NCBI RefSeq assembly: GCF_018977255.1
Contig: NW_024704755.1
Coordinates: 15,810,001 to 15,874,000, forward strand
Reading direction: 5' to 3'
Source: Callorhinchus milii
Lineage: Eukaryota
DNA: 64,000 nt
The notes beneath the pieces were generated by a model, which was not told where the DNA came from, ran no database searches, and saw only the letters and a program-made list of their open reading frames with translations. Of this stretch, positions 9,001-36,000 are shown piece after piece (positions within the stretch are counted from its first letter, which is position 1; every line of letters starts with the position of its first letter). The translations under genes and the position numbers were made by a program.

Positions 9001-12000
9001 NNNNNNNNNNNNNNNNNNNNNNNNNNNNNNNNNNNNNNNNNNNNNNNNNNNNNNNNNNNNNNNNNNNNNNNNTATACGCATACACATATATGCTCACACA
9101 CACCTATGTATACACACATATACACACACATACATACATATATAGACACGCATATCNNNNNNNNNNNNNNNNNNNNNNNNNNNNNNNNNNNNNNNNNNNN
9201 NNNNNNNNNNNNNNNNNNNNNNNNNNNNNNNNNNNNNNNNNNNNNNNNNNNNNNNNNNNNNNNNNNNNNNNNNNNNNNNNNNNNNNNNNNNNNNNNNNNN
9301 NNNNNNNNNNNNNNNNCATACGCATATATAAACACACACATACACACATGTATACACACACACATAAATTGCTGGCAGGGTGAAACCTAAGGCAAATTTC
9401 CTTACTCCACATGCCTGATAATAAACCCTCAAGAAAAAAAATTATAAATTGGTCACTTCAATCCACGGCTGTTTGAAGGACACTGCTGTGCGCAATTGGC
9501 TGCAGTGTTTTGCCCACAAAACATACAGTCAATCACTTTACAATATATTCTGTGAATTGCTTTGAGATATCTAGAAGATGTGAAAAGCACTTTATCAAAT
9601 GCAAGGGTTATTATTATTATTATATTATTATTGTTTTCATTCTCAATTGGAGATTCAGTAAAAATGTCAGTTATTGTATTTCATTCATTTTAGGGGTACA
9701 CAGGAAACAGAATGATCCAGACCATCATAACCAACAGGTAACATACATCCCATGCATACCTAAAGGGTGATTGATAGCATTGAAAAGGATTGTGTTGTTT
9801 ATAATTATATGAGGATGTTTTCAAAATATTTCTTACCTGATTACCCGTTTCACTATGTCATTCAAATTGGGTTCACACCAATATGAGGCACCAAAGCAAT
9901 GCAGGTAACATAATAAACAAGCCAACCGGTCTTGAGAAAACATTCCCATACATTAGGGCAAAAGTTGAGAGTTTCAGTTTGTGATTTACAGGCAATGCAA
10001 GGAGGAGATGCTGAGACGGTGACTTATATCACACTGGATTTGAAAAGTTCCAATAAACTTTCAAGACCTAAACATCAGGAGGACAGGACAGTGTACGCCA
10101 AGGTACAGCTGAAAATATACAATTATATTATTCTAACCGTAATAAAGAGATTGAAGCCCATGTGTTCTGTTTTGGACACCTCACTTCAGGGAGGATGTTA
10201 AATCCTGCAGAGAAGATTTGTGAAGTGTGGTTTGTTTTCATTGGAGCGAGACTGTTCAGAGGGGATCTGATCAACATGCACCAAATTACAAATTATGTTA
10301 AAATCTGCCAAGAAGATGTGTGAGAATTATATAAGGAAGCTGGAGAAATCTGCTTCCATTGGAGCAAAGAAAGTTGTGAGGGGATCTGATAAAGGTGTAT
10401 CAAATTCGCAATGATTTTGACATGGTATGAAGAATGAAGCTATTCCCGCTGATAAGAGAGTCAGAAAATAGAGGACATGTATACGTTAGTCTAAAGAGCG
10501 AAAGGAAAGTTCAGCAGATTGTTTTCACACTGGGCCTTGTTTTGGTAAGGTAGTAAAAGCAGAGCCTATTGTGAGTTTCAATAAAGAAGTCGATAGGCCC
10601 ATGAATTATATACTGAACGGGGCCTCTAGTCCCCAAGACCTCAACAACTTATCCCAAATATTGTTCTTTATTCGTGAGCCTAGACAGTGCATGCAGCAAA
10701 TTAGGCTCCTCGATAGACATCACTACTTAATGGAAACAGTCTTACGCACCTCTTTCCGACAGACAATTGACGAATTGCACACTACCTGAGAGGTCCCCCC
10801 TCTCCATTCCCAGGCAAGGGATGTTGAGGTTATTTGCCTCGCTGCCTGGACAACTCTGGGAGGGAGCTGGGTACCTCTGGGTTCCTACAGATGGGTTTGG
10901 AACTGAACAGTTGTCTTTACAATTGAGCTATAGAAGAAACTATCAAAGAGATTCCAATGGTTATTTTTTTTTCTGTTTGAATTTTCGTATAAAGACTGAA
11001 TTCATTAAATTCCAATTCCGTGGCTTTTTTAGATCAAACAAAAGGCAGAAGATGATAAGCAGGTATATGCTACTTTGGAGTTTTCTGGCCCGGAGACAGT
11101 AGGAAAACCTAAGAAAAGCAACCCAAATATAGAGTATACCGCAGTGCAGGTGAGAAATCGCGAAGGACATTGGAGGGCGTTTACAGGAAACCAAAATCAA
11201 TGATATGTGGCAATGTTAGCTGCAGGAGCTGATTATTAGAGCAAAGTGATGGTAGGTTCTCTAACATATAAAGTAATATGGTAGGGCCTATACATGGTAG
11301 GAAACCTACCATCAGCCCCACTCCCACCCCACCACCTACACGCCACCACCCACCCCCACCACCACATACACGCGCATACACACACACACACACATCAATG
11401 AATGTTGAGTTCATTGCAGCTTTCTCCATATAAATTGGGGTTGGAGCCAGGTACATCTATGATACTTATAGCACTGAATAGTTGGCTTTATCAAGTGAGA
11501 TATGGGAATAAACAAGATGGAGATACGTATCAACAAGGGGCAGAAAACTCTAGTGGGAGTAGTTTATAGCCCCCCGAACAGCAGTCACAGTATCTCTCAA
11601 GGTATAAATCAGGAAATTAGCAGAGCACGTAGTAAAGGAAAAACATTAATTGTGGGTGATTTTAATCTGCACATAAATTGCGACAATCAAATTGGGAAAA
11701 ATATGATAGAAGAAGAGTTTATAGAATGTATTAGGGATAATTATCTGTATCAGTATGCCGAAGAACCAACCAAGGAACAGGCCATATTAGACCTTGTTTT
11801 GTGCAATGAAGCAGGGCTGATCAGCAAACTGGAAATTAAGGCTCCTCGAGGGCAAAGTGATCATAATATGATGGAATTTAGCATTAAGTTAAAGAGAGAA
11901 ATAGTTAAGTCCGAAGCAAAAGTTTTAAATTTAAGTAGAGCCAATTTTGCTGGTATGAGAAAGAATTTAGCCAAAATAAGTTAGACTAAAGGATTTGACA

Positions 12001-14314
12001 GTAGACCAGCAATGGCAGACGTTTAAGGAGATAGTGCAAAATCCCCAGCGAGCACGTATTCCTTTGAGGAATAAGAATGCCACGGGAAAGGTGGCCCAAC
12101 CGTGGCTAACTGGAGCAGTTAGGGAAAGTATAAAGTTAAAGGAAGAAGCCTATAAAACAGCTAAGATAAGTAGTAAACCCGAGGATTGGGAGAACTTTAG
12201 GGATCAACAAAGGAGAACCAAAAAAGTGATTAAGAGGGAGAAAATGGAATATGAGGGCAAACTAGCGAAGAACATAAAGACAGACTGTAAGAGTTTTTAC
12301 AAATATATAAAGAGGAAGAGGCTGTCAAGGGTAAATGTGGGTTCGCTACAGGCAGAGACGGGCGGAATTATAGTAGGGAACAAAGACATGACAGAGTCAT
12401 TAAACAAGTACTTTGCTACTGTCTTCACCTTAGAAGACACTGAAAACCTACCAAGAATAGAGGGGAACCAAGAAGACAATGTTAGCGAGCAACTTGGAGG
12501 AATTAATATTAGTAAAGAAATGGTTTTAGGTAAATTATCAGGTCTTAAAACTGATAAATCTCCTGGACCTGATGGCCTACATCCTAGGGTTTTAAAAGAG
12601 GTGGCTACTGAGATAGTGGATGGCTTGTCTTTGATCTTCCAAAATTCTCTGGATTCTGGAACGGTTCCCATTGATTGGAAGATTGCAAACGTAACACCAC
12701 TATTTAAGAAGGGTGGGAGAGAAAAGATGGGGAACTATAGACCAGTTAGTCTGACATCAGTAGTAGGGAAAATTCTTGAGTCCTTAATTAAAGATGTCGT
12801 TATGGGATTCCTGGAAGACCATAACAAGATTAGGCAGAGTCAACATGGCTTTACAAAAGGGAAGTCATGCTTAACTAATCTTTTAGAGTTTTTTGAAGAT
12901 GTATCTGCAGGTTAGATAGGGGAGAACCAGTAGATGTAGTATATTTAGATTTTAAAAAGGCATTTGACAAAGTGCCACACAAAAGGCTATTGCACAAGGT
13001 TAAGGCCCATGGGATTAATGGGAACATATTAGCATGGATTGAAGAGTGGCTAATGGGTAGAAAACAGAGAGTAGGGATAAACGGGTCATTCTCGAATTGG
13101 CAGGATGTGACTAGTGGAGTGCCACAAGGATCAGTGCTTGGGCCTCAGCTATTTACAATTTACATCAATGATCTAGACGAGGACATTGAATGTAACATAT
13201 CTAAATTCGCGGATGACACTAAACTCGGTGGGAGAGTAAGCTCTGAGGATGATGCAAAAAGATTGCAACGGGATATAGATAGGCGAGGGGAGTGGGCAAG
13301 TAGGTGACAGATGGAATTTAATATGGGAAAGTGTGAAGTTATTCAGCTAGGTAGCAAAAATAGGAAAACAGATTATTTTCTAGAGAGGGAGAGATTAGAT
13401 AGTGTTAGAGTGCAGAGGGATTTGGGTGTCCTTGTACACCAATCTCAAAAAGTTAGTTTGCAGGTGCAGCAGCAACTAAGAAGGCGAACGGCATGTTAGC
13501 ATTCATTGTAAAAGGTTTAGAGTACAAGAGTAGGGAAGTCTTGCTGCAATTGTATAGGGCCTTGGTGAGACCGCACCGAGAGTATTGTGTGCAGTTTTGG
13601 TTTCCTTATTTAAAAAAGGACATACTTGCCCTGGAGGGGGTGCAGAGTAGATTCATTCGGTTAGTTCCTGGGATGAGGGGATTGACCTATGAGGATAGGC
13701 TGAATAAACTAGGGCTGTATTCTCTAGAGTACAGAAGAATTAGGGGAGATCTTATTGAAACATATAAGATTCTTAAAGGGTGGAATAAAGTAGACACTGA
13801 GGGTTTGTTTCCCCTGGTAGGAGAATCTATAACCAGGGGTCACAGTCTTAAGATTAAGGGTCAGCCTTTTAGAACAGAGTTGAGGAAACATTTCTTCACT
13901 CAGAGGGTAGTGAATTTATGGAATTCACTCCCCCAGAAGTGTGTAGATGCTCAGTCCTTGAACATCTTCAAGGCTGAGACTGATAGATTTTTAAAAAATA
14001 GGGATTAGGGGATATGGGGATAGGGCAGGTAATAAGAGTGAGGTCTGAAGATTAGCCATGATCTTATCGAATGGCGGGGCACAGGCTCAAGGGGCCGAAT
14101 GGCCTACTCCTGCTCCTAATTCTTATGTTCTTATGTTCTTATATGGGTATTTTCAATGATATTTCTGATTTTTTTGCAAAGAGAGCAAACTAACTAAATT
14201 ACCAATCCTTGCCTGTTACAGACCATGCAAGGGGCAGCTGGTAACAACCTCACATATGCTACTCTTCATTTTTCTGACTCCAAGACAACACAAAAAATAT
14301 TCACCGTGAAGTAA
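3040..14314 (+). CDS. Gene 1: inhibitory-type V-C1-TM IgSF receptor with ITIM/ITSM tail (SIRP/NKp30/NITR-like architecture), about 383 aa as assembled
   Basis: Exons with canonical GT-AG and consistent phases: leader 3040-3094 ([18 protein letters not shown]), V 3275-3580 ([20 protein letters not shown]), C1 5567-5878 (C..FYPE..W..YTC), TM 8462-8575 ([33 protein letters not shown]), cyt1 9694-9737, cyt2 9992-10102 (VTYITL, TVYAK|I), cyt3 11033-11149 (QVYATL, IEYTAV), cyt4 14222-14337. Cyt4 keeps LTYATL but is 116 nt versus 117 in paralogs, giving TAA at 14312-14314. Confidence 0.85.
3275..3580 (+). CDS. Gene 1 V-type Ig exon (phase 1-1, J-like G strand)
   Basis: ttctgacag acceptor and TG|gtaagt donor; matches ORF 3286..3678; two Cys, [19 protein letters not shown]. 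Confidence 0.92.
4040..4650. mobile_element. Back-to-back L2 3' fragments in gene 1 V-C1 intron (4040-4345 minus, 4345-4650 plus)
   Basis: [32 protein letters not shown] on the plus strand; L2 tail on the minus strand. Confidence 0.75.
5567..5878 (+). CDS. Gene 1 C1-set Ig exon
   Basis: ttattgcag acceptor and TAG|gtagga donor; [21 protein letters not shown]; 312 nt. Confidence 0.92.
6225..6675 (+). mobile_element. L2 3' fragment; similar minus-strand fragments at about 32330-32610, 46480-46700 and 52365-52600
   Basis: [36 protein letters not shown] and tail GTGAAAGGGGCTATACTAATG(TTG)n. Confidence 0.8.
7295..7690 (+). mobile_element. Long Deu-domain-type SINE
   Basis: tRNA-like head, central CATTGTCAGAGGTGACATCCTTCGGATGAGAGATTAAACCAAGATCCCGTCTGCCTG segment resembling the Deu domain (recognised from memory), and (ATT)n tail. 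Confidence 0.65.
8735..9365. repeat. Compound (CA)/(TA) microsatellite with two N gaps (8939-9072, 9157-9317)
   Basis: Direct reading of the sequence. Confidence 0.95.
11525..14142 (+). mobile_element. 5'-truncated CR1/L3 LINE (ORF2 endonuclease C-part + RT) in gene 1 intron
   Basis: ORFs 11502-14008 contain [39 protein letters not shown]. Stops at 11982, 12913 and 13305 plus a frameshift. 3' tail (TTCTTATG)x3. Absent at the same site in genes 3 and 5. Confidence 0.95.
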
Positions 14315-16306: not shown

Positions 16307-16633
16307 GTCCTGTAGCTCAGTGGTTAGAGCACTCGCTTTGCAAGCGAGAGACCTGAGTTCAATTCCAGGCAGAGGGCGAAACCTTGAGCAAGTTTCCTTA
16401 CTCCACACAGAGCCTAATAATAATCCCTCCAAAACCAAAAACAATAATAAATTGGTCATTTTCAATCTACGACTGTTTGTGGGACATCGCTGTGCGCAAT
16501 TGGCTGCCGCGTTCGCCCACAAATATACAGTCAATTCACTTTACAGTGTGTTCTGTGAAGCATTTTGGGACGTCCTCCGGACGTGAAAACCGCTATATCA
16601 AATGCAAGGATTATTATTATTATTATTATTATT
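16307..16633 (+). mobile_element. Short tRNA-derived SINE with L2-like 3' tail
   Basis: Head TAGCTCAGTGGTTAGAGCAC (A box) and GTTCAATTCC (B box); body ends GACGTGAAAACCGCTATATCAAATGCAAGG(ATT)n. Confidence 0.85.
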
Positions 16634-17398
16634 GAAATGCTTCCTGCTTTAGCAGTAGATTTAGGACACAATGGTCCTGGATAACATTCCAGTATATTGC
16701 TGGGGGGGGGGGAATGCTGCAATAATGCAGCATTAAGGTGACGTCATTCGGATGAGACTCTAGGAAGTTTACTCTGTCGATTCTGCAAGTTAATGATCTT
16801 ATTACTTCATTCCTGAAAAAAAGAAGCTTCTGCTTAGTTGTCAATCATCTTATGGCTGTTTGTAGAATTTTGCTGTGCACAAAATTGCTGTCACATGTGT
16901 TTACAAAATACAGTCACTATATTTAACATTAATTCGTGTAAATCCTTTGTGGCTTGTCGACTCCATAGCTGCTATAAAAAGGAAAGTGTTTTTTCTGCGT
17001 AAGCAATATCTCCCCCTCCTACGCCCCACATAAGGATGAGATGTTCTAAACCAAAGGGCCAAATTTGATAGGGAAAGAAAAGGAGACAGCAATGGAATGG
17101 TGTGTGACTCTCGCACAAACCAGAAACAGAAAAGGGTGAGGAAACGCAGGGGAGAAAGTAGAAAGGTGAAGGATATCGACACGGTTTAAAGTTGTTGAAA
17201 TAAATACAATTTTTAGTACTAATAAGCAAAGAAAAACATTAAAATGTGATTATTTCTATGAAGACCTATGCTACATAGTTGGGAGGAAAGGTACAACACG
17301 CCCATGTGATATTGGGCGGGTCAGGCAGCACCTATGGAGAAAGGAAAATGAGTCAAACTTTCGGGTCCACGACCCTTCATCAGAATTGGGGCCTGACG

Positions 17399-20439: not shown

Positions 20440-21970
20440 CAACAACAACAACAAGATTCCATTTATAGAGCGCCTTTCACGTCGGAAGGACGTCCCAAGG
20501 CGCTGGTCAGTTGGGTCAGGACTCAAGCAGGGGGGATATGGTCAGGGTGAGGGGAGGGGAGCGAGGGAGCGAGGAATGGGTAGAGAGTCGAGAGGGGAGC
20601 TGAAGGCGCGGTCAAAGAGAAAGGTCTTGAGACCGGCCTTGAAGGAGGAAAGGGAGGAAGCAAGACAAAGGCACTGGGGGATGGAGTTCCAGAGCCCAGG
20701 GGCTGAGAGGCTGAAGGCCCGGCCAATGATGGTAGGGCAGTTGGGACGGGGGATGTGGAGTAGACCGGAGGCAGAGGAACGGAGAGTATGGGCAGGTAGG
20801 TAGGGGGATAGTAGGTCGGAGAGGTAGGAGGGAGCAAGGCCGTGAATGGCCTTGTAGGTGAGGATGAGGGTCTTGAATTCAATCCTCTGGGGGATGGGGA
20901 GCAGTGGAGGTGAGCGAGGGTGGGAGTGATGTGGTCACAAAGCCTGGTGCGGGACTCTACAGGAGCTGCAGAGTTCTGAATGACCTGCAGCTTGTGGAGG
21001 GATGTGCCGGAAAGGCCGGCGAGGAGACAGATCCCGTAGTCCAGCCTTGAGGTGATAAAGGCATGGACCAGAGTTTCAGCAGCATAAGGGGTGAGGTAGT
21101 GCCGTAGTCTGGCGATATTTTGGAGATGATGGAAGGCGGTGCAAGTTGTGGAGTGGATATGAGGAAGAAAGAACAGCTCAGGGTTGAACAGAACGCCGAG
21201 GTTCCTGATGGCTTTGAGAGGTGGAGAGTGCAGCCTTGGATGCTGATGCTGTCAGCGTTTGAGGTGCGGAGGCACCGATGTGAGCCAATCAGGAGGGCCT
21301 CAGTTTTGCGCACGTTGAGCTGAAGAAAGTTGTCTCTCGTCCAGGACTCGATGTCGGACAGGCAGGCTGTCAGGACATCGGTGGTCGTGGAGTTGAGGGT
21401 AGAGGAAGAATGCAGAGTTGGGTGTCATCCGCATACATGTGGAAGTTAACCCCATGTCTGCGGATGATATCACCAAGGGGGAGCATATAGAGGGTGAAGA
21501 GGAGGGGACTGAGGACAGAGCCCTGAGGGACACCGCACGAGACAGTGCGGGGGCTGGAGGAAAAGCCGATTGTGGAAACAAAATGGAGACGGTGGGAGAG
21601 GTACAACCTAAACCACTCAAGGACAGGGCCTTGAAGGTTGAGGTGGGAGGACAAGCGATGCAGGAGGATAGAGTGGTTGACCGTATCGAATGCTGCCAAT
21701 AGGTCGAGGAGGACGAGGAGGCAGAGGGAGCCCTGGTCGCAGATGGTCAAGATGTTATTTGTGACCTTGACCAGGATGGTTTCCGGGCAGCATGGAAACC
21801 CGACTGAAGGGGTTCGAATAATGCATGGGTGGAGAGGAAAGAGCGCAGCTGGGAGGCGACAACTCTTTCAAGGAACTTGGACAGGAAGCGGAGGTTGGAG
21901 ATGGGCCGGTAGCTTGATAGCTGCGATGCACCAAGGGAGGGCTTTTTCAAAGTGGGAGTGATGGCAGTGC
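20440..21970 (-). mobile_element. 5'-truncated L2-clade LINE, decayed RT
   Basis: Minus-strand ORFs [41 protein letters not shown]; tail GTGAAAGGCGCTCTATAAAT..(GTT)n at 20440-20500. Confidence 0.92.
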
Positions 21971-21971
21971 A

Positions 21972-22300
21972 GTCCTGTAGCTCAGTGGTTAGAGCACTCG
22001 CTTTGCAAGTGAGAGACCTGAGTTCAATTCCAAGCAGGTCAGGGCGAAACCTTGGACAAGTTTCCTTACTCCACACAGAGCCTAATAATAATCCCTCCAA
22101 AACCAAAAACAATAATAAATTGGTCATTTTCAATCTACAACTGTTTGTGGGACACTGCTGTGCGCAATTCGCTGCCGCGTTCGCCCACAAATGTACAGTC
22201 AATTCACTTTACAGTATGTTCTGTGAAGACCTTTGGGAGGTCCTCCCGACGTGAAAAGCGCAATATCAAATGCAAGGATTATTATTATTATTGTTATTAT
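21972..22300 (+). mobile_element. Short tRNA-derived SINE, near-identical to the 16307 copy
   Basis: Same head, body and tail; abuts the 5' end of the truncated L2. Confidence 0.85.
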
Positions 22301-24014
22301 CATTACAATGTCATCTGATCTGCATCTTTCCCCTCATTTCTTTTGGATTATTAACACCTCTACTCCCCTGCTTTGTTGCAATAACAACCCCCTCCCCCTA
22401 CCACCAAACTGCTATGTTTTGTATCATTAACACCTCTTTAACCCGTCATCCCCTGTCCTCTACGCTATTTTCTCCTTTGCCTTCCTTGGCCTGCCTCTCC
22501 CCTCTCTGTTAGTCTTTAAAAGCCTCTCCCTCAAAACATACCCCAGTTCAGACCAAGGGACATGGACCCGAAACTTTGACTCACTTTCATTTCTCCATAG
22601 ATGCTGCCTGACATGCTGAGTATTCCCAGCGACTTCTGTTTTTGTTGGAGGTGTTAAGAGTCTGGTTCTGGAGAAGGGCTGCAGAGCACAGGAGGGTCTG
22701 CAGCTTGCGTAGTGAGATGCTGGGAGTCCCATGAGTAGGGAATTGAAATGATCAAGCCTGGACGTGATGAATGCACCAGGGAGAGCAATATTGATTGATT
22801 CAGGTGATGTTGTGAAGGTGCTGGAAACCTGAATAGTTGCATTTTTGGGCTTGGCTGATGTCTGACATCTGCTGGAATACAGCACCATGTTTGGAAGTAT
22901 CCAAACCAAAATGAGAGTTCCATGTATCTCACGTACACATCAACATTTTTGCGTATGGAAAGCGGAAGCGCAAGAGGAAGCATATAGATGAAGAAGAGGA
23001 GTGAGCTCATGTTATATGATAGTATAAAGAGAATTAGCAAAACACAGAAACATGGCACCCCACACATTTACCAAATTTAGAAAAAATCAGTTATGATATC
23101 TAATATTGAAGGGTTATTTGATGGTTATAATAAACTTGGGATTCGAAACAGAGCTGTAATGTTAAAGCGGTTCAAAGGCAAATATTGTCTACTGTAATTA
23201 GTGTGTATCCTGTGAAGTGCTTCGAGACGTCCTCCATGAGTGAAATGCACTATTTCAAATGTAAAGATTATACTATTTCATATTGAACAGTGCAGCACTA
23301 CATTACAGTAGGTGAACACGGTAGCCAATTTGACAGAAATGTCCACAAACAGATATTAAATAAATTATCATTTTTAATTAGCGATGTCTGGCCAGGACAC
23401 CAGGAAAAAATCTCTTCTGTTTTCCAGTAGCGATGTAGGGTATTTTACACCCAGCTGAAAAGACAAACTGGACCTCAAGTAAACATTTCACTCGAAGGAT
23501 AGCACCCCCATTAGAGAATGTTCTTAAAATACTCTTGTCAACATTGAACTCATAATCTTCTGACTCAATAGCTAGAATGCTAAGACAAGCTGACACCTAT
23601 TGCTCATCCTTGCAATTCACCTGCTGCCTTTATGAAATGAAAACGTTTTAAAACACATTGCTGTTAAGTTAATGACTGTGTTTGGAAGCAAGAGTGGCAC
23701 AGAAAATGCACAGTCGATTCAACAATATCATTCAAAACAATATTTAGCACACAGATTTTGACATTAATTGGAAAATACTCCCCAAATCCATAGATTAAAA
23801 GTGATCTTCTGTTCGGGTAACAGTGGAATGTAATGGACTCGGCCATATGTTGCTACAGCGCCTTGAGTATATATGAGCTGGGAGCTCTATTACCAAATTG
23901 AGACAATGTCAACATCATTTTATTTAGAACTATTTAACAGTATCTCTTCAAGCTATAAATGGTTAACTTTATTTATAGATGTATGTCTGAAAGGTGCGCT
24001 TCACAATTCATTTA

Positions 24015-24324
24015 TAATAAATAATAATCCTTGCTTTTGATATAGCACTTTTCACATCTTCTAGATGTCTCAAAGTGCTTCACAAAATATTCTATAAAGT
24101 GAATTGACTGCATATTTGTGGTCGAAACAAGGCAACTGATTGTGCAGAGCAGTATCCCAGAACATCCTGAATTCAAGTGACCAATTTATTATTGTTTTTT
24201 TTTCATGAGGGATTATCATCAGGCATGTGGAGTAAGGAATCTCGCCCAAGGTTTCGCCCTGCCGGGAATCGAACCCAGGTCTCTCGCTTACAAGGCGAGT
24301 GCTCAAACCAATGAGCTACCAATC
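24015..24324 (-). mobile_element. Short tRNA-derived SINE (minus strand)
   Basis: Reverse complement reads TAGCTCATTGGTTTGAGCACTCGCCTTGTAAGCGAG..GGTTCGATTCCC..AAACCTTGGGCGAG, followed by the same tail. Confidence 0.85.
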
Positions 24325-24858
24325 TAACCACTGGAAATATAGGGTTGTGTGAGAATTTTGAAGTCGATCCATTCATTGTTAAGGAGCCAGTGTAGCCTGG
24401 CAAAGATTGGTGAGTTGGCGATGCACACTTTAAATCTCTGCATTAATCATTGTTTTGAATGATACTATTGAGGCTTCAGAACCTGGTAAATCAATGTGTA
24501 CAGTTTTGGTCACTCCAACAGAGAGGCTGTCCGAGAGCCAACCCAGAGGAGGAAGGAGACAAAAGCAATGAGAATAATCCCAATTGTTAGAGGAATGAGC
24601 TATCAACAAGGAATAGGCAAGCTGGGCTCTCCAATCTTGTGACAAAACAATTCATTGGCGACTCATAAGGTCTCACTAATATAACACCTTTCACGTACAG
24701 CGAAAGTCTGAAAACATTTTATAATATCAGAGTGGGAGGCCATCTACGCCCTCAGGGACAGGAAGCCAAGCATCACTCTCACATCTCATCTCAAGCAAAT
24801 GCAACCCCTTGTTACAAAGCAGTGACAGATTCAGAGTTCGTCTCAGTCAGAGATCACA

Positions 24859-25316
24859 ATGTTGGCGAGTGTTGTGTTTCAGTGTCTGTCTCTCCTGTGG
24901 ATAATTTCTAAAGGTTTGTGCATATTCAATATCCAAGTGTTCGGAAAAAGAAAGTGTTTATCTCTTATAGTATTTTGTTTCAAAACAATGTTTGAATTTA
25001 TTTCTGACAGTTGCTGACGTTACGTTGATCCAAGTAATGCAACGACCCAAACACATCGCTATCAACAGAGGTGAAGATGTGACATTCTCCTGCAACTTCT
25101 CTCGCAACCAGAGAGTGAAAATTTACTGGTGGAAGCAGGGAGCGAGCGAATACATGGGAAGCAGTCACAAGAAAACATCTCACCTCGAAGCTTCTGAAAG
25201 AGCCACCCTCAAGCTCCTGGATGCAGAACTTCAGGATTCTGGAACCTATTACTGTACAATGGTGTTTCAGGGAAATATAACAGTAAATGGATCTGGATCA
25301 CATTTAACTGTATATG
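24859..25316 (+). CDS. Gene 2: orphan leader + intact V exon; no own C1/TM found
   Basis: Leader 24859-24913 and V 25011-25316 (open frame, ..DSGTYYCTMVFQGNITVNGSGSHLTVY) with intact splice sites and upstream promoter block. No C1 or TM homolog seen before gene 3. Confidence 0.8.
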
Positions 25317-26543
25317 GTAAGTGTCATAATAAGTCAGAGATCGTAACTATTACATTGGCTCAAACCATAATTTATTTATGTAACGTCTCTCACTGTTGGG
25401 AGAGCATCTTAAAGCTCTTTACAAAGGCTGAGGGCTGCCGGAGCTGAAACCGAGGTGGGAGGGGAGAGTGGCGAAAAGGACAGTCAAAGAGGTGCATTTT
25501 CAGGTGGGATTCGATAGGAGAGAGGGACGGGCGAGAAGGATGGATTTCTATAAGGAATTCTAGAAGTTTGGGGCAATCTGGCTGAACGTTCCCTACACAT
25601 GAATATTCCCTAAAGTGGGGTGACATAAAACACTGGACACCATATTCAAAATAAGGTGTAACTATCGATTTATATATATCAACCATTAACCCTGTGATTT
25701 ATATTTATAAATCCTAGATTTCCACTTGATTTTTTTGAGAGCTTTTTTCACGTTGACTTCCCACAGTAAGATTTATCCACATTTAAACCCTAAGCCCTCT
25801 GATCTGCTTCTTTAATGATTATCCTCATGTTGTGGAGGGCAGCGGGGGGGGGGGGGGGGGGGGGGGGGGGTATCCAGTGTCTCATTTGATCTAAACCAAG
25901 CTGAAGTTTTCATTCATCCCCCCTACACATGGAAATTCCAGAGATGGAAGGGAATGCACACTCTCTCCCTGGAGGGATACAACCTGCTTAACTAATTCGA
26001 GAAATTATTAGGTGCAGGTTGGCAAGAGCCAAGTGTTCGCGCCCCAGATTATGCGTTGGGATACGGCTGGAGTGTAACCAGCTAAAACCGCATAGCTTAC
26101 CATTGATGTTGCTGTCTGGCAAGGTTTCCCATTGCTTTTCCAGCTCGGACGAGCCTATCCGTTAGGGCTTTGGCTTTTAGTGTTAACAGGAGCTGAGTGT
26201 GAATGTCTCTCTGCCCACAGTGGCTGGTCGGCCTTTCCAAGTTCTGTCCATGAGCCCGGCTGTCATCAGCAGTGCCCTGTGGACCCGCCCGGCTCAGGAA
26301 CCGGATTACTGAGACTCACATAGAGGACAGGATTGATTTCCATATTCTGTGCCAGGCTTGTGACCTTGTAGCCACTTCAGCCACATATAGTCCACTCCAC
26401 AAAACACACAGTCACCACCATTTACAGTATATCCTGTGAAGCGCTTTCAGACATTTCGACAACATGGTGAGGCGCGATATCAAATGCAAGAATTATTATT
26501 ATTATAATCTCACTTCAGCCTTAGGAACCTGGAAGCTACGGCG

Positions 26544-29500
26544 ATGAAGGTGAAGGACATTCCGCGGGGGGATGAGGAGGAGGAGCCACGGCCAGAGGTG
26601 AGTGTGTGGGCGAGGCTTGTGGAGTGTGGAGATGTCCCTGATCTCAGAGGCTCCTCTCACACGTGCGAGAGGTGTGGGAGGAGAAGGACAATCTCCACAC
26701 AATTCACAGCCACAACACACGGACCAACGTACAGGAGACATGACCCTCTCATTGCCTCTGTACACAGCCTGTGAGCCTGGGAATGTCCAAGACGAGTGAC
26801 CAGTTGAGTGACACTACAGGTTGGGTTAAAATCAGCAAAAATCAATGTTAAAAACATTTCCCAAAGTATTGCAACTGCCTGCTGTGTGAGGAGGGCCGTG
26901 TGCCTGACGGCCTGACTGGGGCCAGTCTGAATAACAATCCATTTCTTTCTCAGGACCAGACAAGTGCAAAGGAATTATTCATGGATTTTATGTTCTCTGA
27001 CACATGCAATGAGGTAATAATAATAATTATCATAATAACCGCATTTGATACATCGCCTTATCATTTTATTGACACATATCAAGCCACTTTACAGGACATA
27101 CTTTGAAGTGAAGAGACTACATTTTGGGGACTAAATGCGGCAGCCAGTTGCACTCTGAAGTTTCCCACAAAGAGCCGTGGAATCAATGAGAGAAAGGCAT
27201 TGGGAAACATGCATCAATCCCCAGTTGGGAATCGCACTCCAGCATCCAGCACATGGCAATTCCCGATCTGACTTGCACTGCCAGACATGGACAGCGCCAA
27301 TTCCAGTCAGTGAGAAGCTGGCAAGTGGAGTTGTCCCTGATCTGAGAGCTTCCTCTCACACACAAGAGAAAGGAAGGGAGAGGTCAGTCCCCACTTAATT
27401 CACACCCACAACATACAAATACCATACAGGATACATGTTGGACTACACCAACTGCCTGCTCGCTGGATCACGGCTGCTCGGCACCACAACAACACAACAA
27501 CAACAACAACAACAAAAGCGCATTTCCCTTTGGGAGGACGTCCCAAAGCCTTGGACAATTAAGGGTTTACACTGAAGCTGTGGTATGGAATCAAGAGCTG
27601 GCAGGGTGGGAGACATGAAGCAGGCCAGTGCCCACTGAGCGGTGTAACAGGGTTTGTATTAAGACATGGGTTCTGCACACACCAATGGCAGGTTTGTTTC
27701 TTAGGAAGAAGATCAAGTGGCATATCGTGACCTGGCGCTGGCATGGGCTCAACAGGATTTGGAGCGTCCAGCCAACCTGGTGAGTGTCAGACCCGGAGAC
27801 TCACCGAGTTACAGTGCAACCAGGTTTGGAGACTTGACATTCTCCAGCCAAGTCCTACAATGTCTTCAGACAGTCATGGCTGCCAGGGCCTTGCCAGCAG
27901 CTAATCCTCTGCTTTGTGTCTCTGCTACAGGTCAAGAACATCTCAGCCGAGAGGGAGGAGGAAAGGAGCAGGTAAGGGTTTTGCTACTCGCACAGCTGTC
28001 TGCAAATTCCCCTAAATCCCTTCAGCTCGAACCGTCTCTTCCAACCTTCAAATCGAGTTCAGAAATAATCACTTTGGCCGTTCCTTTTGGCGGCATCCTC
28101 AAACCCTGCCCTTCCCACAGCTGATCAGAGTTCCCAGTGTCTGTGTGCAGCTCTTTGAGACTTGAGTCTAATGTGAGCAGCATCATCTATAGGTTAAGTT
28201 GTTGTTGTTGTTGTTTGTTAGGCAGCAAAACGGCAAGAAGACAAGGGAGGAGAATAATGAGTTTGGAACAGAACAATTCCCACAGACCGTGAGTGAGCGC
28301 AGGCGGGCAAGTCTTTGTGTAATTAATGTGATGAGGGAGCGGGCATTTTACAGAGCAGCATAGGTGGTGGCAGCTGATTACGTCCCATTCACATCCAGTG
28401 CAGCTCTGTGTCCCCACCCATACAATCTCTGGATAATATTTATTATAACAATAATGCTTCCATTTGATTCCTTATAATGTCATTCATACATCTCAAAGCG
28501 CTTCACCGGAGATTCTGTAAAGCATTTCCCAAAGTAATCTCACCGTCTTCCATGGTTGGGACCTCCTCCTGATGGGAAAGGCACTATACAAATGTAAATT
28601 GTTGTTGTCGTTGTTGTTGTCTGCTGGGTGAGTAGGGCCATGTGCCTGACTGCCTAACCCGGAGCCAATCTCAATGACAACCCATTTTTTTCTCAGGAAG
28701 AAGAAATAATGACACAACGGTGCATGGAATTTCTTCTTTCAAACTCCTCCAATCAGGTAACAATAATTATAATAATTCTTGCATTTGATACAGCAGCTTC
28801 TTATGTCATCCTGACATCTCAAAGCATTTGACAGGACATACTGGAAAGTGTAGTGATTGTGTGTTTTGCGGACAAAACGCGGAAGCCAGTTTCACACAGA
28901 AGTTTGCCACAAAAAGCTATGGAGCCATTCCGGCATCCAGCACACGGCAATTCCCAATCCAACTGCATCTTTGGACATGGCAAGAAACCATCCCAGTTAG
29001 TGGGAGGCTGGTATGTCCATGACAGGTGGCTTTGAGCTCCCGACTGAGATACCAGGATAATGGACAAGAAGTCTGGTGATGTCCCTGATCTACGAAGCTA
29101 CTCTCACACACAGGGGTCGGAGGGGCGAGGACAAACTCCAGTTAATTCCCAGCCAACACATACAGAAATCAAATAGGAAACTTGAGCCTCCCACACCCCT
29201 GCAATGTGAGGACGTCCCAAGGATCTGGATAGTTAAGGGTAGTTAGAATCAAGAAACTAAGTCAGCGCACACTAACAGCAGCTTTGTATTTCAGGAAAAA
29301 GGACTGCTTTCCCCCCTTGACCTGGAGCTGGCGATGGCACAAGAGGCTCAGGAGCGGCATGCCAAAGTGGTGAGTGTCAGACCCATAGAGTCACCGAGCG
29401 GTCGGGATTGGAGACTTGATATTCTCCAGCACAATCTGGCAATGTCTTCAGCCAGGGCTTTGCCAGCAGATAATCCTCTTCTTTCTGTCAACTTTCCAGG

Positions 29501-31420
29501 TCAAGAACATCACGGCAGAGAGGGATGAGGCGAGGAGCAGGTAAGCTTTTTGCTACGCACCCGCACTTCATGAACTGCCCCCAATTCCCTTCACCTCGCA
29601 TTGTCTGTTTCTGCCTTCAAACTCCTCTCAGAAATGAATCACTTTGGCCATTCCTATCCTCAAACCCTGCCCTTCCCCTGGCTGCTCAGAGCTCCTGATG
29701 TCTGTGTGAAGCTTTTGAAATGTGAGTGGCATTGTGCAAATTGTTGTTGTTGTTGTTTGTTAGGCTGAAGAAAAACGAACACATGGAGGAACCCAAGAAT
29801 AAAACTGTTGTAAAAGTGGACGTTCCACAGTCAGTGAGTGAGCCCAGGGAGGCAAGTCGCTGTGTAACTAATGGGCCAAGGGAGCAGATGCTTTACAGTG
29901 TAGACGGTGGCGGCTGGTAACATACAGTGCAGCAGAGCTTTCCCACCCGCATCCCTATCACCTGTCGCCTCGCTATCAGGAGTCTCATAATACTTATTAC
30001 CATAGTAATCCTTGCATTTGATACAGTGCCTTATCGTGTCATTGAGGCATCTCAAAGCTCTTCACAGGATATGCTGTAAAGTGTAGTGACTGTTTCTTTG
30101 TGGGAGAAGCGCGGCAGCCAATTTACGCACAGCATTGTCCGACAAACTGTGTGGAATGAGTGACCAATTTTACCTGTGGCATTGTTGGCCAGGGCACTGG
30201 GAGAGAGAAGCTCCCTTCTCTTTTCAAATTGTACCACGAGATCTTTAACATCACCTGAACAGGCAGATGGGACTTCATATTAGCATCTCATCCGAAGATT
30301 GGTGCCTCCAGCAAAGCAGCACTCCCCCAGCAATGCATTGGAGTGTCACCTTAGACTAAGTGATTCTAAGTCCCGATGTGGGATTTGAACCCAAAACCTT
30401 CTGTCTTAGAGTAGGGCGCTACCACTGAACCAGGATGACACAAGATCTGAGCGAGTGCCTGAATCTTTCACTTTGTCTTTAGGACAAAGAAGAACAGAAA
30501 GAGGAAGAAGTTCAGGGCAGCCAGAGAGAGCAGGTAATGCAAGAAATGCTGCGATCGCAAGAGAAGTGGAGAAGGTGGAGGAGCTCCAGTCTATATTCAA
30601 GCTGCTGATTTTCAGTGACTGTCTAATCTCTAGCAAATTCTGTCCCCACAGACATCGGTCGAAGTGGGAGTGAAGGAACTCTCCAGGGGTAAGCAAAAGT
30701 CTCTGTCCGTTTCCTGGAGAGTGTGAGTTCCTCTCAGTCACCCATTTGGGGCAGGTCATGTCTCTGCCAATCAGCTCAGGGGCTAGAAACTGGAAATGGG
30801 AACAGGAATTCTGTCTTCACATTCCAGCAGATCCCCTCAGCCTGTTACCCTTTACAGGGAATATGAACGAGCACCATGTCTGGAGGGGAGGGGAAAGGAT
30901 CTTGCACTCGTTGGGCTGCCTGGATCACAAGCCTGGTCTCGCTCCTTGTTTAATTCCACCCGAGTCTCGTTGCTTCAAAGACTTTGCTCCTAATCCTCCA
31001 ATCCCTCTCGTGGCTGAGTGAGACCTTAGAGTTTGCAGAGAGGTCGGTCTGGAGGGATACTCGCGTGTGGGAGGGTCATTGTCAAAGTGTCTTTTTATGT
31101 TCCCACCAGGAGCAGCAGCAGCAGAAGCCGAGAAGAAGAAGAAAAAGAGGAAAAGGTACAGTGATGCGCTCTCAGTGATGCTCTCTCAGTGAGACTCTCT
31201 GGGTTGCCAGGAAGGCTGGTTGAGCACAGGACGTTGCATTCACTGAAGAAACGGCTGGATTCTGTGATGCGGAGACTGTCGGTGGGAGTCGAATACTGTT
31301 GTGATCCTGTTAATATTCAGCTGTTTCCAGTTGTTTCCGGGAATCACTGTTGTTTTCTTTCGTACACACAGGACCTGCTGCTGGTGTTGTTTTCCCTGGA
31401 GGAAAAGAACTAATGACTGA
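26544..31420 (+). CDS. Unrecognised 13-micro-exon gene; charged, partly coiled-coil-like protein of about 241 aa with polybasic plus Cys-cluster C-terminus
   Basis: Exons 26544-26597, 26954-27013, 27705-27779, 27931-27971, 28222-28288, 28697-28756, 29295-29369, 29500-29540, 29764-29833, 30483-30533, 30652-30688, 31110-31155, 31372-31420. All have pyrimidine-rich AG acceptors and GTRAG/GTAA-type donors (one GTACAG). Junction phases 0,0,0,2,0,0,0,2,0,0,1,2 join into 726 nt without an internal stop. AATAAA at 31835. Confidence 0.75.
29990..30440 (-). mobile_element. Long Deu-domain-type SINE inside an intron of the micro-exon gene
   Basis: Reverse complement has a head GTCATCCTGGTTCAGTGGTAGCGCCC..GGGTTCAAATCCC, a Deu-like core and the shared tail. 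Further remnants at about 18890-19290, 23290-23620, 42150-42530, 45640-46030 and 61860-62160. Confidence 0.65.
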
Positions 31421-31494
31421 GAGCAACGAACACTCCTCCCCTCTCCTCTCGTCTGGCTGGATCATGGCTCCTCTGCTCCTCTCCTTGGAAGATC

Positions 31495-31790
31495 ATGTTA
31501 TTATTATTTTTAATTGTTATTATCTTTATTATTGTTATTAGTATTATTCTTGTTATTATTGTTATTATTATTATTATTATTCCTATTGTTGGATTTTGGT
31601 GGGGTTAGTTTCTCATGTTTACAATTATTCTTGCTATTAATATTATGATTGCTATTATTATGGTGATTACATTATTGTTGTAATATTTTTGTTTTTGTTA
31701 TATTATATTGTGATATTATATCTCGCAGTGTATCTTCAAAGGACCATATTAGTATTATTATTACTGTTATTACTATTATTATTAATGCTT
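31495..31790. repeat. (TTA/TTG)n-rich low-complexity tract in the putative 3' UTR of the micro-exon gene
   Basis: Direct reading; lies between the stop at 31420 and AATAAA at 31835. Confidence 0.85.
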
Positions 31791-31834
31791 GCAGTTGTAA
31801 AATGTGAAATATATCATATTTTTGTTCGTTTGTC

Positions 31835-31840
31835 AATAAA
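31835..31840 (+). terminator. Candidate polyadenylation signal of the micro-exon gene
   Basis: AATAAA followed by a T/GT-rich element (tttgttttctggg) at about 31862. Confidence 0.55.
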
Positions 31841-32775
31841 AGTTTACTTTATGGAGCCAAACTTTGTTTTCTGGGCTCTTTACTGTGGTGTCGGATTGTG
31901 TGGTCATTAGGTATGAATGGAGTAAGGAGGGGCTCGGGTTCCATTCTCGCCTCATTAAACAACGCTGGTAAACAAGCGAGTGAAACACATCTGTAAGGCA
32001 TTCGCACTTTCAAACATTGTCCAGTTGTCCTGCAAACATCAGGCCTCGATGTTATGATTGCGTGTATGAAAGTTTTAGGCAGCCTAAGGTGTTAGACAGA
32101 GGTGGAGAAGAACAGAGCGGGTCATTGTTATTCACATTTGTTTGTCTGAACAAACAGCTGGGACTCTAATGTCAAGTTGATGCTATGGCAATTTCAGTAT
32201 CATTTTATTTACAACTATTTAATTTCATCTCTTCGACCTTCAAATGGTTTGTGTTATTCACATTTGTCTGTCTGGAAGATGCTCTTTACAATTAATTTGA
32301 AGACCAACTTGTGCTCATACTGTTATGCAATGAAACAACTTGCGCCCATCACCAGGAATGGATGAAAGCTCGGCCACCGATGTTGGAAAGGAGGGGACGA
32401 GAAACCAGCAGGAGGCCAAAGCCATTCGAGGGGAGGCGGCGGGGAGCGGTGTGGAGAGTAAACAGGTCGGAGAGATTGTGGGGGACAGTCAGGGAATGCG
32501 TGGTTATGTAAACCAGTATGAGGATCTTGAAGTCAATCGATTCTGTGATAAGGAGCCAGTGTAGTCTGGCAAGGACTCCTGGGATGGCAATACAAAGTTT
32601 AAATCTCTGCATTAATTTTTGGTTGAATGATACTATTGAGATTCAAAACCTTATAAGTCACTGTGTACAGTAGCTGTCACCGCAACATAGGGGCTGCCCT
32701 AGAGACAGTCCAGAGAAGGAAGGAGAGAGAAGCAACAAGAATCATCCCAAGGGTTAGAGGAACGATCTATCAACA

Positions 32776-32800
32776 NNNNNNNNNNNNNNNNNNNNNNNNN
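32776..32800. other. 25-N assembly gap
   Basis: The flanks (gatctatcaaca / ggaatggaca) are directly adjacent in the paralogs at about 46865 and 52755. Confidence 0.95.
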
Positions 32801-33049: not shown

Positions 33050-36000
33050 ATGTTGGCGAGTGTTGTGTTTCAGTGTCTGTCTCTCATGTGGATCATTCCT
33101 AAAGGTTTGTCCTTATTCAATATCACAGTTTGCTGAAAAAGGACAAGGATAAAGTTCTTATTCTAGTTGTATCCATTTATGCAGTGTATCGTATCTCTAA
33201 CTTACTCTGTGTTTATCTCTTTGTCGCAGTACTTTTCTTTCAAAACAATATTTGAATTTATTTCTGACAGTTGCTGACGGGACATCGATCCAAGTAACTC
33301 AACATCCCGAACACGTCGCTGTAAACATTGGTGAAAGTATGAAGTTCTCCTGTAACTTCCCCGACACTAAGATTGTAATAACAGGGAGAGAGTGAATACC
33401 TGAGAAATGATCCTAAGAAAGAATTTGGTCAGGAAAGTACAGGAAGAGCCTTCCTCAAACTCTTGGATGTGCACCACCAGGATTCTGGAATCTATTACTG
33501 TGCAGCGGTGACTCCGGGAAAAACAACAGTAAATGGGACTGGATCACATTTAACGGTATATGATGAGTGTCATTATAAGGCAGAGAGCTTAACTATTTAC
33601 TCACGCCACCGGGATTCTGGAGCCTATCACTGTGCAATGCAGACTGACTCACGAAAATGTTTACTCGATCAGTCATTTACATTTATGAAAAGTCTCTCAT
33701 TGTTGGGGGAGAATCTTAAAGCGCTTTACAAAGGCTGAGGGGCTGCCGGAGCTGAGACCGAGCTGGGAGGGGAGATGGCCACAAGGACAGTCAAACTGGT
33801 GTGTCTTCAGGTGGGATTTGCGAGGAGAGAGGGAAGGGCGAGAAGGATGGATTTCGGGAAGGAGTTTATAATGATTTATCATCTAAAATATATTGGTTCT
33901 TATTATTCACCACAGTCTGTCGAGTGTAAGCTCAAATTCGTATGCATTACATTTCGTGTGCCATTTCTATGCCTAATCCACTCATCTGTCTCCCTCTCGC
34001 TGAAGGCGCTTACAATCTTTTTGCAATAACCAAATGCAAGTTCTACATTGTTATTTATTTTGTGAGTCTTGTAAACTTCGAAACTATCCCCCATATACCA
34101 TACTCAAGATTAAATAATGTTGCGAAATATTATAGGTTAGTGGGAGTTGACTTAGAAAATTACACTAATAGCTGTTGAGTTTCATAATTCACTTGATAGC
34201 TGTCGTGAGATATTATTGTGCACAAAATTGTCTGTCGCGTAGGAAAACAAATACACGCAATACACTTCATAGTTAAACCTGCGAAGCGATTTGAGACGTG
34301 ATAAGGCGTTATATCAAAGATTTTTATTGCAGTGCCCCCAATTCCTCTGAATAATTCGTGCAAAGATCCTCAAAGACATCCTTCTGTGTTTCGACTCTCG
34401 TGTGTAAAACAGCAGCGTTTTACCCGAGAATCTCACCTTCACATGGTTTAAAAACGGCACAGAAATTACAACTGGGATACATACCACTAAACGACAGAAC
34501 ACTGAGGGACTGTTTGAAGCTTCCAGCTCTGTGGAGGAGACACAGTCTGTCCAGAATGGGACAGTTTATACCTGTTGTGTGTCTCACATCAGCCTCCAGA
34601 CTCCAGGAATTCGCAACTACACCATTTGCACGGTTTACCTTCCTGACAAAGGTAGGAATACAGCAGTCTCAGTGTCAATTAGCGTTAAGGGTCTTCGCAA
34701 GAGAATTTTCTTCTTTTAATTCACACCATGAACGACAGCCATATAATTTCCTTCATGTAAAATATAAACCACTTTCACCTTTTAATGCATAACATTTGAA
34801 TTGCTATGAATGCAAAGTATCACTTGCCCTTGAAAATATTCACAATTCAGATTTCAAACCTTTCATTTACAATATATTGTATTCAAGAATGCGATATGAA
34901 ATATGAATTTCCACCCCATTTCATAACTAGGAGTTGCTTTATGTCCCCTCTGTTTCACTTCAAGACCTGTCTTCAATATCGCCATTATATTAAATAACTT
35001 CAGTAAAATAGATGTCTCTCTCTCCAGCTGTCTCCCTGCAAAATAACTGAGATACCTGCCCCCGTTCTCCTTACTAATAATAAATATATTCACCCACAAA
35101 ATATAGAATCAAAAATATAATTTCCTACAAAGCACTTTGAGACACCAGCATTATGTAATGAGGCATTATAACAATGCAATACTTATTATTTATTATTATT
35201 CCCTGGAGGTTTCATTGTCTACAGCTTTTTCTCCACAAAATAATTAACTTGCTTTCTCATTTCCCCTATTGTTCAATAAAAATGATCGAATACATTTTTT
35301 TAAAACGTAATCCGATGGCGAAGCAGGAGACAAGTCACATGAGACATCCCGGTTTCCATTTTTTAAATGGAAAAACATAACATCGTAATTTGCCCTTAAA
35401 CACTTTTTTTTCAAGAGGATTGTGTAATTGCTGAAACTCTAAACCATAAGCTCATAATGTGCAGCTCCATCTCTCATCTCCCGGTTTCCAGACCAAACAG
35501 TCTCCCAAATCAAAAAATCCAGATGCTGCAAATCTGAAAACAAAAACAGAAGTCGTTGGGAACACTCAGCAGATCAGGCAGTATATATGGAGAAAGAAAG
35601 TGAGTCCTGTTCTGACGATGGGTTGTGGACCTGAAAAGTTGACTAACTTTCCTTTCTCTATAGACGCTGCCTGACTGCTGAGTGTTCCCACAGACTTCTG
35701 TTTTTATCCCCAAACTGGTGGCTTACCCTATGACTGTGGGGCATTACTGTGCAAAAATTGGATGCCGGGATTGCACAAAAGTACACGATCACAATATTTT
35801 ACAGTCATTGTATAAAGCGATTTGAGATGTCTTGACAATATAATATATGGATCATTGTATCATTATTATGATCTTTCCTACAGAGGAAAATAAACTTCGA
35901 AAGTGGTTACAGATCGTTGGACCTGCAGTGGGGTTGGCTTTGTTGGTGCTGTTAGTGTACTTTAGAAAGCGATCCAAATTAAAGAAAACGAAAGGTAAGA

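Follow-up and report, generated by a model that had tools for sequence, protein, structure and literature searches.

A probable 5'-truncated partial duplicate of an uncharacterised Callorhinchus micro-exon gene family within a SIRP-like receptor cluster

The window analysed here is a stretch of 64,000 nucleotides from Callorhinchus milii (NCBI RefSeq assembly GCF_018977255.1, contig NW_024704755.1, positions 15,810,001 to 15,874,000 of the forward strand). Between positions 26544 and 31840 of the window, a chain of thirteen very short exons lies behind the V exon of a SIRP-like receptor gene, referred to as receptor gene 2. An earlier note on this DNA, written by a model from the letters, had proposed one 726-nt frame built from thirteen exons of 37-75 nt, and all 13 of the peptide pieces it gave were located on the + strand, between 26544 and 31420. 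When the boundaries were forced to AG...GT and nearby alternatives were searched, a single solution gave the 241-aa protein, 726 nt in total, at the same coordinates. A pyrimidine tract is present at every acceptor, and the AG acceptors and the 3' untranslated region (UTR) with AATAAA (31835-31840) were confirmed; this poly(A) signal is kept in the paralogue described below. Two details had to be corrected. The GTGAGT donors number five and not six, and position 26544 does not open a first exon: the exon is internal, its conserved acceptor puts its start at 26519, with an open frame between this point and the ATG.

Exons 2-5 and exons 6-9, together with their introns, are the two halves of an ancient internal tandem duplication. 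By self-blast, 26876-27181 and 27672-28522 match 28618-28923 and 29262-30081 with 68-72% DNA identity. The rate of synonymous substitution (dS) between the repeat halves is 1.13, and the ratio of the nonsynonymous rate to it (dN/dS) is 0.40.

With the 241-aa sequence as query, three proteins were matched among 5.8 billion clustered sequences, all of them from C. milii (BLASTP E = 4e-74 to 1e-54, identity 66-70%, query coverage 75-88%). They are XP_042194552.1 (P0001; 'cilia- and flagella-associated protein 251-like'; 70% identical by BLASTP, 68% in the multiple alignment), XP_007893157.1 (P0002; 'stress response protein NST1-like X2'; 68% and 72%), and XP_007893156.1 (P0003; 'gelsolin-related protein of 125 kDa-like'; 66% and 67%). 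The cluster of P0002 also contains XP_042194551.1, a 383-aa protein named 'trichohyalin-like'. Pfam found no CFAP251, trichohyalin, NST1 or gelsolin-related domain in the window protein or in the three paralogue proteins, even at E <= 10; these names are arbitrary automatic labels without meaning. The paralogues are three head-to-tail copies, about 15 kb apart, at 18.75-18.79 Mb of scaffold MU249841.1. Two loci were fetched from this scaffold, L001 carrying copy 2 and L003 carrying copy 3, and no V or C1 exon was found across the ~45 kb fetched around the array.

In the pairwise alignment, 13 of the 13 exons correspond, their phases are identical, and the AG and GT dinucleotides are intact in both copies. 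Identity between the window and paralogue DNA is 85.5% in the exons and 81.2% in the introns, rising to 89-96% in exons 10-13. The homology reaches its 5' limit near L001:10860 and its 3' limit at L003:19237; similarity to copy 2 stops a few bases past AATAAA, and copy 3 can be aligned up to 31971. Full-length members of the family have 16 exons, of which the window copy has exons 4-16. Because annotated C. milii genes contain this exon chain with identical phases and splice sites, the 13 micro-exons are genuine coding exons of a C. milii orphan family, and the idea of a chance chain of splice-like motifs and short frames, for which the shortness of the exons is the only argument, is refuted and has practically no probability left. 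The MU249845.1 loci of two other proteins (P0015 and P0026) have only repeats in common with the window.

This means that the description of the gene as hidden, given by the earlier note, holds for the window copy and fails for the family, whose paralogues were already predicted by NCBI; nor is the product an unrecognised novelty, being so close to those predicted proteins. In other words, the family had been predicted without being characterised and under wrong names, and it is the member in the window that is new. A literature search yielded nothing on the micro-exon family or on elephant-shark SIRP-like genes.

Relatives outside C. milii were not found in any of the searches. A phmmer search with P0002 against 1.84 billion representative sequences returned only P0002 and its isoform, and when the N-terminal 110 residues of P0030 were used in a word-seeded search, only P0001 was obtained. 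Pfam gave no domain for the window protein, its CEP15-like match being sub-threshold (E = 3.3) and therefore rejected, and none for the three paralogue proteins. Foldseek comparison of the AlphaFold2 model of P0002 with the PDB gave generic helical matches only, all with E > 0.1, and the sequence and repeat-profile searches of the PDB gave nothing significant. The protein and profile searches proposed earlier are thus in line with the suspected restriction to one lineage, C. milii proteins alone being found in both collections. The collections include elasmobranch proteomes, and no other holocephalan appeared among the results. Since micro-exon genes are easily missed by annotation, and for want of a second holocephalan in the results, the family may only provisionally be regarded as restricted to Callorhinchus or Holocephali.

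The window copy is truncated at its 5' end. In L001, the 5' exons of the paralogue are at 10001-10022 (with the ATG), about 10567-10712, and 11319-11364 (poly-Glu). With these three exons (MD..., EEWSVDLSESKWLFEGPDEEL, and poly-Glu) as queries, tblastn gave zero matches across the 64-kb window. The family homology in the window starts at ~25915, inside the paralogue intron 2, so that exons 1-2 are beyond the breakpoint, and exon 3 is left as a decayed remnant. As a member of the family, the window locus is thus incomplete; it is devoid of about 70 N-terminal residues of the paralogues and, because the first three exons are missing, of the family promoter. The tblastn alignment pairs SLRNLEATAMKVKD... 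of the first retained exon with SLRNLEAAVLKVKD... of the paralogue. Around the ATG the open frame reads ...LRNLEATA-M-KVKD in the window and ...LRNLEAAV-L-KVKD in the paralogue: the paralogues have CTG in place of the ATG at 26544, the latter being a copy-specific CTG-to-ATG change. Accordingly, of the proposal of a real and possibly lineage-specific gene, the genuine exons and the confinement of the relatives to C. milii have stood, and its subject has turned out to be a 5'-truncated partial duplicate.

The segment that carries the chain is foreign to the receptor repeat unit. The unit of receptor gene 2 matches its sister units over 24347-25599, ending about 280 nt into the V-C1 intron, and receptor-unit homology resumes at 32156, in the upstream region of the next unit (gene 3). 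The foreign segment replaces the C1, transmembrane (TM) and cytoplasmic exons of receptor gene 2, which is where the earlier note had placed the chain. The leader and V exon of gene 2 are 100% identical to the N-terminal half of XP_007902822.1 (P0008).

It should be mentioned that this older model fuses the leader and the V exon of gene 2 (V2) to a C1-like exon read out of frame. The C1-like exon is absent from the window, where its nearest matches, at 34394 and 48562, are 85-90% identical; this suggests a difference between assemblies or haplotypes, or else a model that spans a mis-join. Separately, an uninterrupted poly-G run of about 30 nt (25843-25872) lies in the non-homologous 5' junction of the insert.

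When the window copy was compared with the L001 paralogue, dS was 0.26, dN 0.14 and dN/dS 0.54, the last being below 1 by Fisher test (p = 0.008). This is the dN/dS comparison that had been suggested, made here with a paralogue and not an orthologue. Of the 57 indel events counted in the introns (4459 columns), 28% have lengths that are multiples of 3. At the intron rate, 9.4 indels and 6.8 frameshifts would be expected in the exons; four indels (3, 3, 6 and 6 nt) and zero frameshifts were observed. Upon random substitution at 10-19%, the frame stayed free of stops in 0.3-3% of trials, and the probability that 48 splice-site nucleotides remain unchanged under neutrality is 4e-5 to 6e-3. The joint neutral probability is ~6e-6, being the product of three one-lineage probabilities with half of the divergence charged to the window lineage. 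An intact frame, intact splice sites and purifying selection, as in a functional coding gene, are thus all present, the selection being moderate.

Table 1. Positions of the micro-exon chain and of associated features in the window
Feature	Position	Strand	Remarks
Thirteen exons of the 241-aa frame		+	lengths in order: 54, 60, 75, 41, 67, 60, 75, 41, 70, 51, 37, 46, 49 nt
First retained exon (paralogue exon 4)	26519-26597	+	acceptor AG 26517-26518; part given by the earlier note 26544-26597
Exon 2	26954-27013	+	60 nt; phase 0-0; donor GTAATA against antisense SINE tail
Exon 3	27705-27779	+	75 nt; codes start of the long helix of repeat A
Exon 4	27931-27971	+	41 nt
Exon 5	28222-28288	+	67 nt; 3-nt in-frame indel relative to paralogue
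Exon 6	28697-28756	+	60 nt; duplicate of exon 2
Exon 7	29295-29369	+	75 nt; duplicate of exon 3
Exon 8	29500-29540	+	41 nt; duplicate of exon 4; 3-nt in-frame indel relative to paralogue
Exon 9	29764-29833	+	70 nt; duplicate of exon 5; 6-nt in-frame indel relative to paralogue
Exon 10	30483-30533	+	51 nt; 96% identity with paralogue
Exon 11	30652-30688	+	37 nt
Exon 12	31110-31155	+	46 nt; codes Ala run and KKKKKRKR
Last exon	31372-31840	+	coding 31372-31420 (TCCWCCFPWRKRTND and stop), then AT-rich 3' UTR
Ancient internal tandem duplication	26876-30081	+	4-exon unit including introns; exons 2-5 and exons 6-9
Family-homologous stretch (exons and introns)	25915-31971	+	blastn with L001/L003, ~80%; starts within paralogue intron 2
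Decayed remnant of paralogue poly-Glu exon 3	26304-26348	+	aligned to L001 11283-11382; no acceptor, no open poly-E frame
Segment foreign to receptor repeat unit	25600-32155	+	~6.5 kb; from self-comparison of the window
Orphan 5' half of SIRP-like receptor gene 2	24859-25316	+	leader 24859-24913; intact V exon 25011-25316; phase-1 donor
SINE pieces near or inside the micro-exon unit	26397-26510	+	
	27014-27189	-	
	28758-28924	-	
	30002-30170	-	
Full SINE copies	16310-16635	+	tRNA-like head
	21971-22298	+	tRNA-like head
	24012-24325	-	tRNA-like head

The predicted 241-aa product has neither a TM segment (the maximum Kyte-Doolittle value over 19 residues is 0.18) nor a signal peptide. It contains 54 Asp and Glu against 43 Lys and Arg residues, and the isoelectric point is 4.7 for the body and 10 for the last 30 residues. 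AlphaFold2 prediction of the paralogue P0002 from the single sequence was all-helical, with a mean pLDDT (predicted local distance difference test) of 77.8 and values above 90 over the helices of exons 3/4 and 7/8. The C-terminus is polybasic and Cys-rich in the window copy (KKKKKRKRTCCWCCFPWRKRTND) as in the paralogue (KKKKRKRTCCWCCFSWRKRTDD). The tail KKKKKRKR-TCCWCCFPW-RKRTND is nearly identical in the paralogue, TCCWCCF(P/S)WRKRT(N/D)D being kept. A polybasic run beside a cluster of cysteines is typical of a membrane anchor that combines electrostatics with S-palmitoylation. The Cys-rich tail looks like a putative palmitoylation site; KKKKKRKR could equally be a nuclear localisation signal.

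Omission of exon 12 (46 nt) shifts the frame of exon 13 and destroys the tail. Past exon 11, the NCBI models of the paralogues end in three frames, with exon 12 included, partly included or skipped, and a form retaining intron 11 is also among them. A splice-controlled membrane anchor is therefore plausible, because skipping of exon 12 would abolish the tail and the models vary in the use of this exon. This variety suggests that the NCBI annotation of the paralogue C-termini is unreliable. It was also observed that one of the models, in the L001/L003 region, translates the AT-rich 3' UTR as protein.

As to repeats, the window is rich in copies of a tRNA-derived short interspersed nuclear element (SINE) that has (ATT)n as its tail. 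Antisense SINE tails directly adjoin the donors of exons 2 and 6 (GTAATAATAAT and GTAACAATAAT), and the acceptor at 26517-26518 sits 13 nt past a sense SINE tail. Since this arrangement of SINEs and splice sites is found also in the paralogue and in both halves of the internal duplication, it is old. An Rfam scan of 24500-32500 for snoRNAs (small nucleolar RNAs) hosted in the short conserved introns gave nothing credible.

Taken together, the locus is best described as an unannotated, 5'-truncated and dispersed partial duplicate of an uncharacterised family that appears restricted to Callorhinchus. A segment of about 6 kb, which starts in the family intron 2 and ends shortly after the poly(A) signal, has come to lie in the SIRP-like cluster, directly behind the V exon of receptor gene 2; this is most simply explained by one copying event. 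On balance, we lean towards the view that the copy is still a coding, working gene making a shortened protein. The 13 retained exons have remained coding-competent under moderate purifying selection, and the copy-specific ATG at 26544 could initiate the 241-aa protein. Its efficient translation would require that transcription start independently between 25317 and 26543, because in a transcript running from V2 the micro-exon frame would come second as a cistron and be poorly translated. The product would be cytosolic. Its acidic body may consist of two tandem repeats of ~81 aa, each a long alpha-helix followed by an E/K-rich linker, and KKKKKRKR-TCCWCCFPW-RKR would bind to the inner face of the membrane by electrostatics and by S-palmitoylation of its four cysteines. 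Inclusion or skipping of exon 12 would then switch this anchor on or off.

Several points weigh against this view of a working gene. The family promoter and the first three exons are gone, and no replacement first exon was identified; the exact window product is absent from the collection of 5.8 billion clustered sequences; and joining of the V2 donor to 26519 is out of frame, which leaves the micro-exon frame in the second position just mentioned. The dN/dS value is only moderate, and exon identity barely exceeds intron identity. Because there is no outgroup, the substitutions cannot be assigned to one lineage, and the constraint, or part of it, could predate a later truncation. As for the anchor, palmitoylation is predicted from the residues of the tail, and the current NCBI paralogue models use other C-terminal frames, the anchor isoform being that of one older Gnomon model.

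Several of these facts are also the ground for a non-functional relic, in which promoter and start were lost at the duplication or the truncation, the frame is not translated, and its openness is explained by constraint that preceded the truncation and by the slow molecular clock of C. milii. The missing exons 1-2 and decayed exon 3, the absence of the copy from the annotated proteins, the small excess of exon over intron identity, the dN/dS value, and the broken state of the neighbouring receptor genes 2 and 3 would all agree with this explanation. However, if the truncation took place with the duplication, which is the simplest assumption for a 6-kb insert with both ends in receptor-unit DNA, all of the dS of 0.26 accumulated after the truncation. 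Under this single-event history, a frame without frameshifts or stops and with 24 splice sites intact would be very unlikely by neutral drift, and continued function is therefore favoured. In addition, a new in-frame ATG heads the retained frame, in an exon that has no upstream ATG. This explanation survives best among the alternatives, and we regard it as possible but doubtful.

Another explanation is a chimeric transcript driven by the V2 promoter, consisting of leader, V2 and micro-exons, whose main product would be a secreted orphan V domain and in which the micro-exon frame is untranslated or re-initiated. The leader and V2 exons are intact with a good donor at the end, the first strong acceptor further on in this orientation is that of 26519, and the next poly(A) signal found is at 31835. 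When 25316 is joined to 26519, the transcript reads ...HLTVY-ALGTWKLRR, then a TGA that overlaps the ATG by two bases (ATGA, 26544-26547). On the other hand, the frames do not match, the V exon ending in phase 1 and the acceptor being in phase 2, and a stop with 12 junctions downstream would normally trigger nonsense-mediated decay. The sole in-frame acceptor (AG 26534-26535) is in a purine-rich, weak context, and the selective upkeep of the downstream frame would be left without explanation. Such a chimera seems improbable.

A more far-reaching picture might also be drawn, in which a gene born as an orphan in Holocephali codes for a membrane-tethered acidic helical adaptor, its splice sites having grown against SINE tails, and in which the window copy was shortened, selectively retained and brought under immune-cell control through a new start or through the ATGA overlap behind V2. 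As a whole, it is speculative and quite improbable.

Finally, the micro-exons could be taken as the cytoplasmic tail of receptor gene 2, in the manner of the chicken BG and butyrophilin-type genes, for they are small, code for helical charged sequence, and follow immediately 3' of an Ig V exon in the same orientation. This was rejected as very improbable. No TM exon separates V2 from the micro-exons, the phase of the V2 donor does not suit that of the acceptor, and the exons of 37-75 nt include no 21-nt heptad exons. Furthermore, on MU249841.1 these exons belong to independent genes that have 5' exons of their own and no Ig exon within about 45 kb, and the sister receptors have ordinary TM segments and tails with immunoreceptor tyrosine-based inhibitory motifs (ITIMs).

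The surrounding array comprises five V exons, at about 3256, 24992, 33252, 47321 and 53163, and four C1 exons, at about 5566, 34332, 48444 and 54269. Receptor gene 1 (V ~3286, C1 ~5566) is identical to XP_007902894.1; this match and that of the V2 part of XP_007902822.1 identify the window as C. milii DNA. The homologues bear PF07686 (V-set) and PF07654 (C1-set) domains and names such as 'tyrosine-protein phosphatase non-receptor type substrate 1-like' (SIRP-alpha-like), and the tail of one of them (P0005) has VTYITL and TVYAKI, motifs of the ITIM and ITSM (immunoreceptor tyrosine-based switch motif) type. From these domains, names and tails, the array is a cluster of SIRP-like V-C1-TM-ITIM genes. 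V-set, C1-set, TM and ITIM/ITSM features are all found in the neighbouring genes and none of them in the micro-exon gene.

Cytoplasmic receptor exons at 9932-10201 and about 56501-56560, with VTYITL and TVYAKV, match the tail of XP_007902894.1. Receptor gene 3 (33252-33597 and 34332-34707) looks pseudogenic, with frame changes at ~33377-33382 in the V exon and ~34394-34421 in the C1 exon. Receptor gene 4 was modelled provisionally; in this model, the exon that follows C1 (49714-49828) codes for the hydrophobic segment FGFSAVIILLVVVFLV, and an in-frame stop follows 9 codons past this segment, before the donor. Gene 4 would thus be short-tailed and devoid of ITIMs, unlike gene 1. Reverse-transcriptase open reading frames of long interspersed nuclear elements (LINEs) with the FADDT motif are at 11502-14008 (+) and 21370-21750 (-), and the paralogue loci contain several copies of the LINE 3' end at 13994-14144, with ~91% identity to it. 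A CA/TA-rich microsatellite (8635-9432) contains N runs at 8939-9072 and 9157-9316; a further 25 N are at 32776-32800.

The main value of these results is for annotation: a real, constrained paralogue was missed by views based on open reading frames and, apparently, by gene prediction here. For comparative immunology, they describe the remodelling of a SIRP-like cluster in a chimaera, in which an ectopic insertion of 6.5 kb cost one receptor its C1, TM and signalling exons and left an intact orphan V. If expressed, the copy would be a lineage-restricted gene that survived the loss of its 5' end through a new start codon. The results have no bearing on any long-standing open question.

Among known systems, the schistosome micro-exon genes (MEGs) code for secreted proteins with signal peptides and have exons of 6-36 nt. 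As in the MEGs, the coding sequence here is made mostly of very short exons, several of which are symmetric and permit in-frame skipping, whereas the lineages are unrelated and the sequences show no relationship. In the chicken BG and butyrophilin-type genes, tails are built from many tiny exons, with 21-nt heptad exons and a TM or B30.2 exon. Very short exons, charged helical sequence and a position beside a V exon of the Ig superfamily are common to both; the micro-exon family differs from them in the size of its exons, in having no TM or B30.2 exon, in being out of frame with the V exon, and in existing apart from Ig exons.

Polybasic and cysteine-containing lipid anchors occur at the C-terminus of paralemmin, the N-terminus of GAP-43 and the hypervariable tails of palmitoylated Rho and Ras proteins. 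The window product likewise has a Lys/Arg run beside clustered cysteines and aromatic residues at the terminus of a hydrophilic protein. It differs from them in having no CaaX box, no GTPase or paralemmin domain and no detectable homology, and its acylation is putative. The closest relatives are the C. milii paralogues themselves. Compared with these, the window copy is without exons 1-3, has ATG in place of CTG, and is a single, unannotated copy in a SIRP-like cluster instead of a member of a tandem array; the same 13 exons, phases and splice sites, the 4-exon duplication, the KKKKRKR-TCCWCCFxW tail and the poly(A) signal are shared by all.

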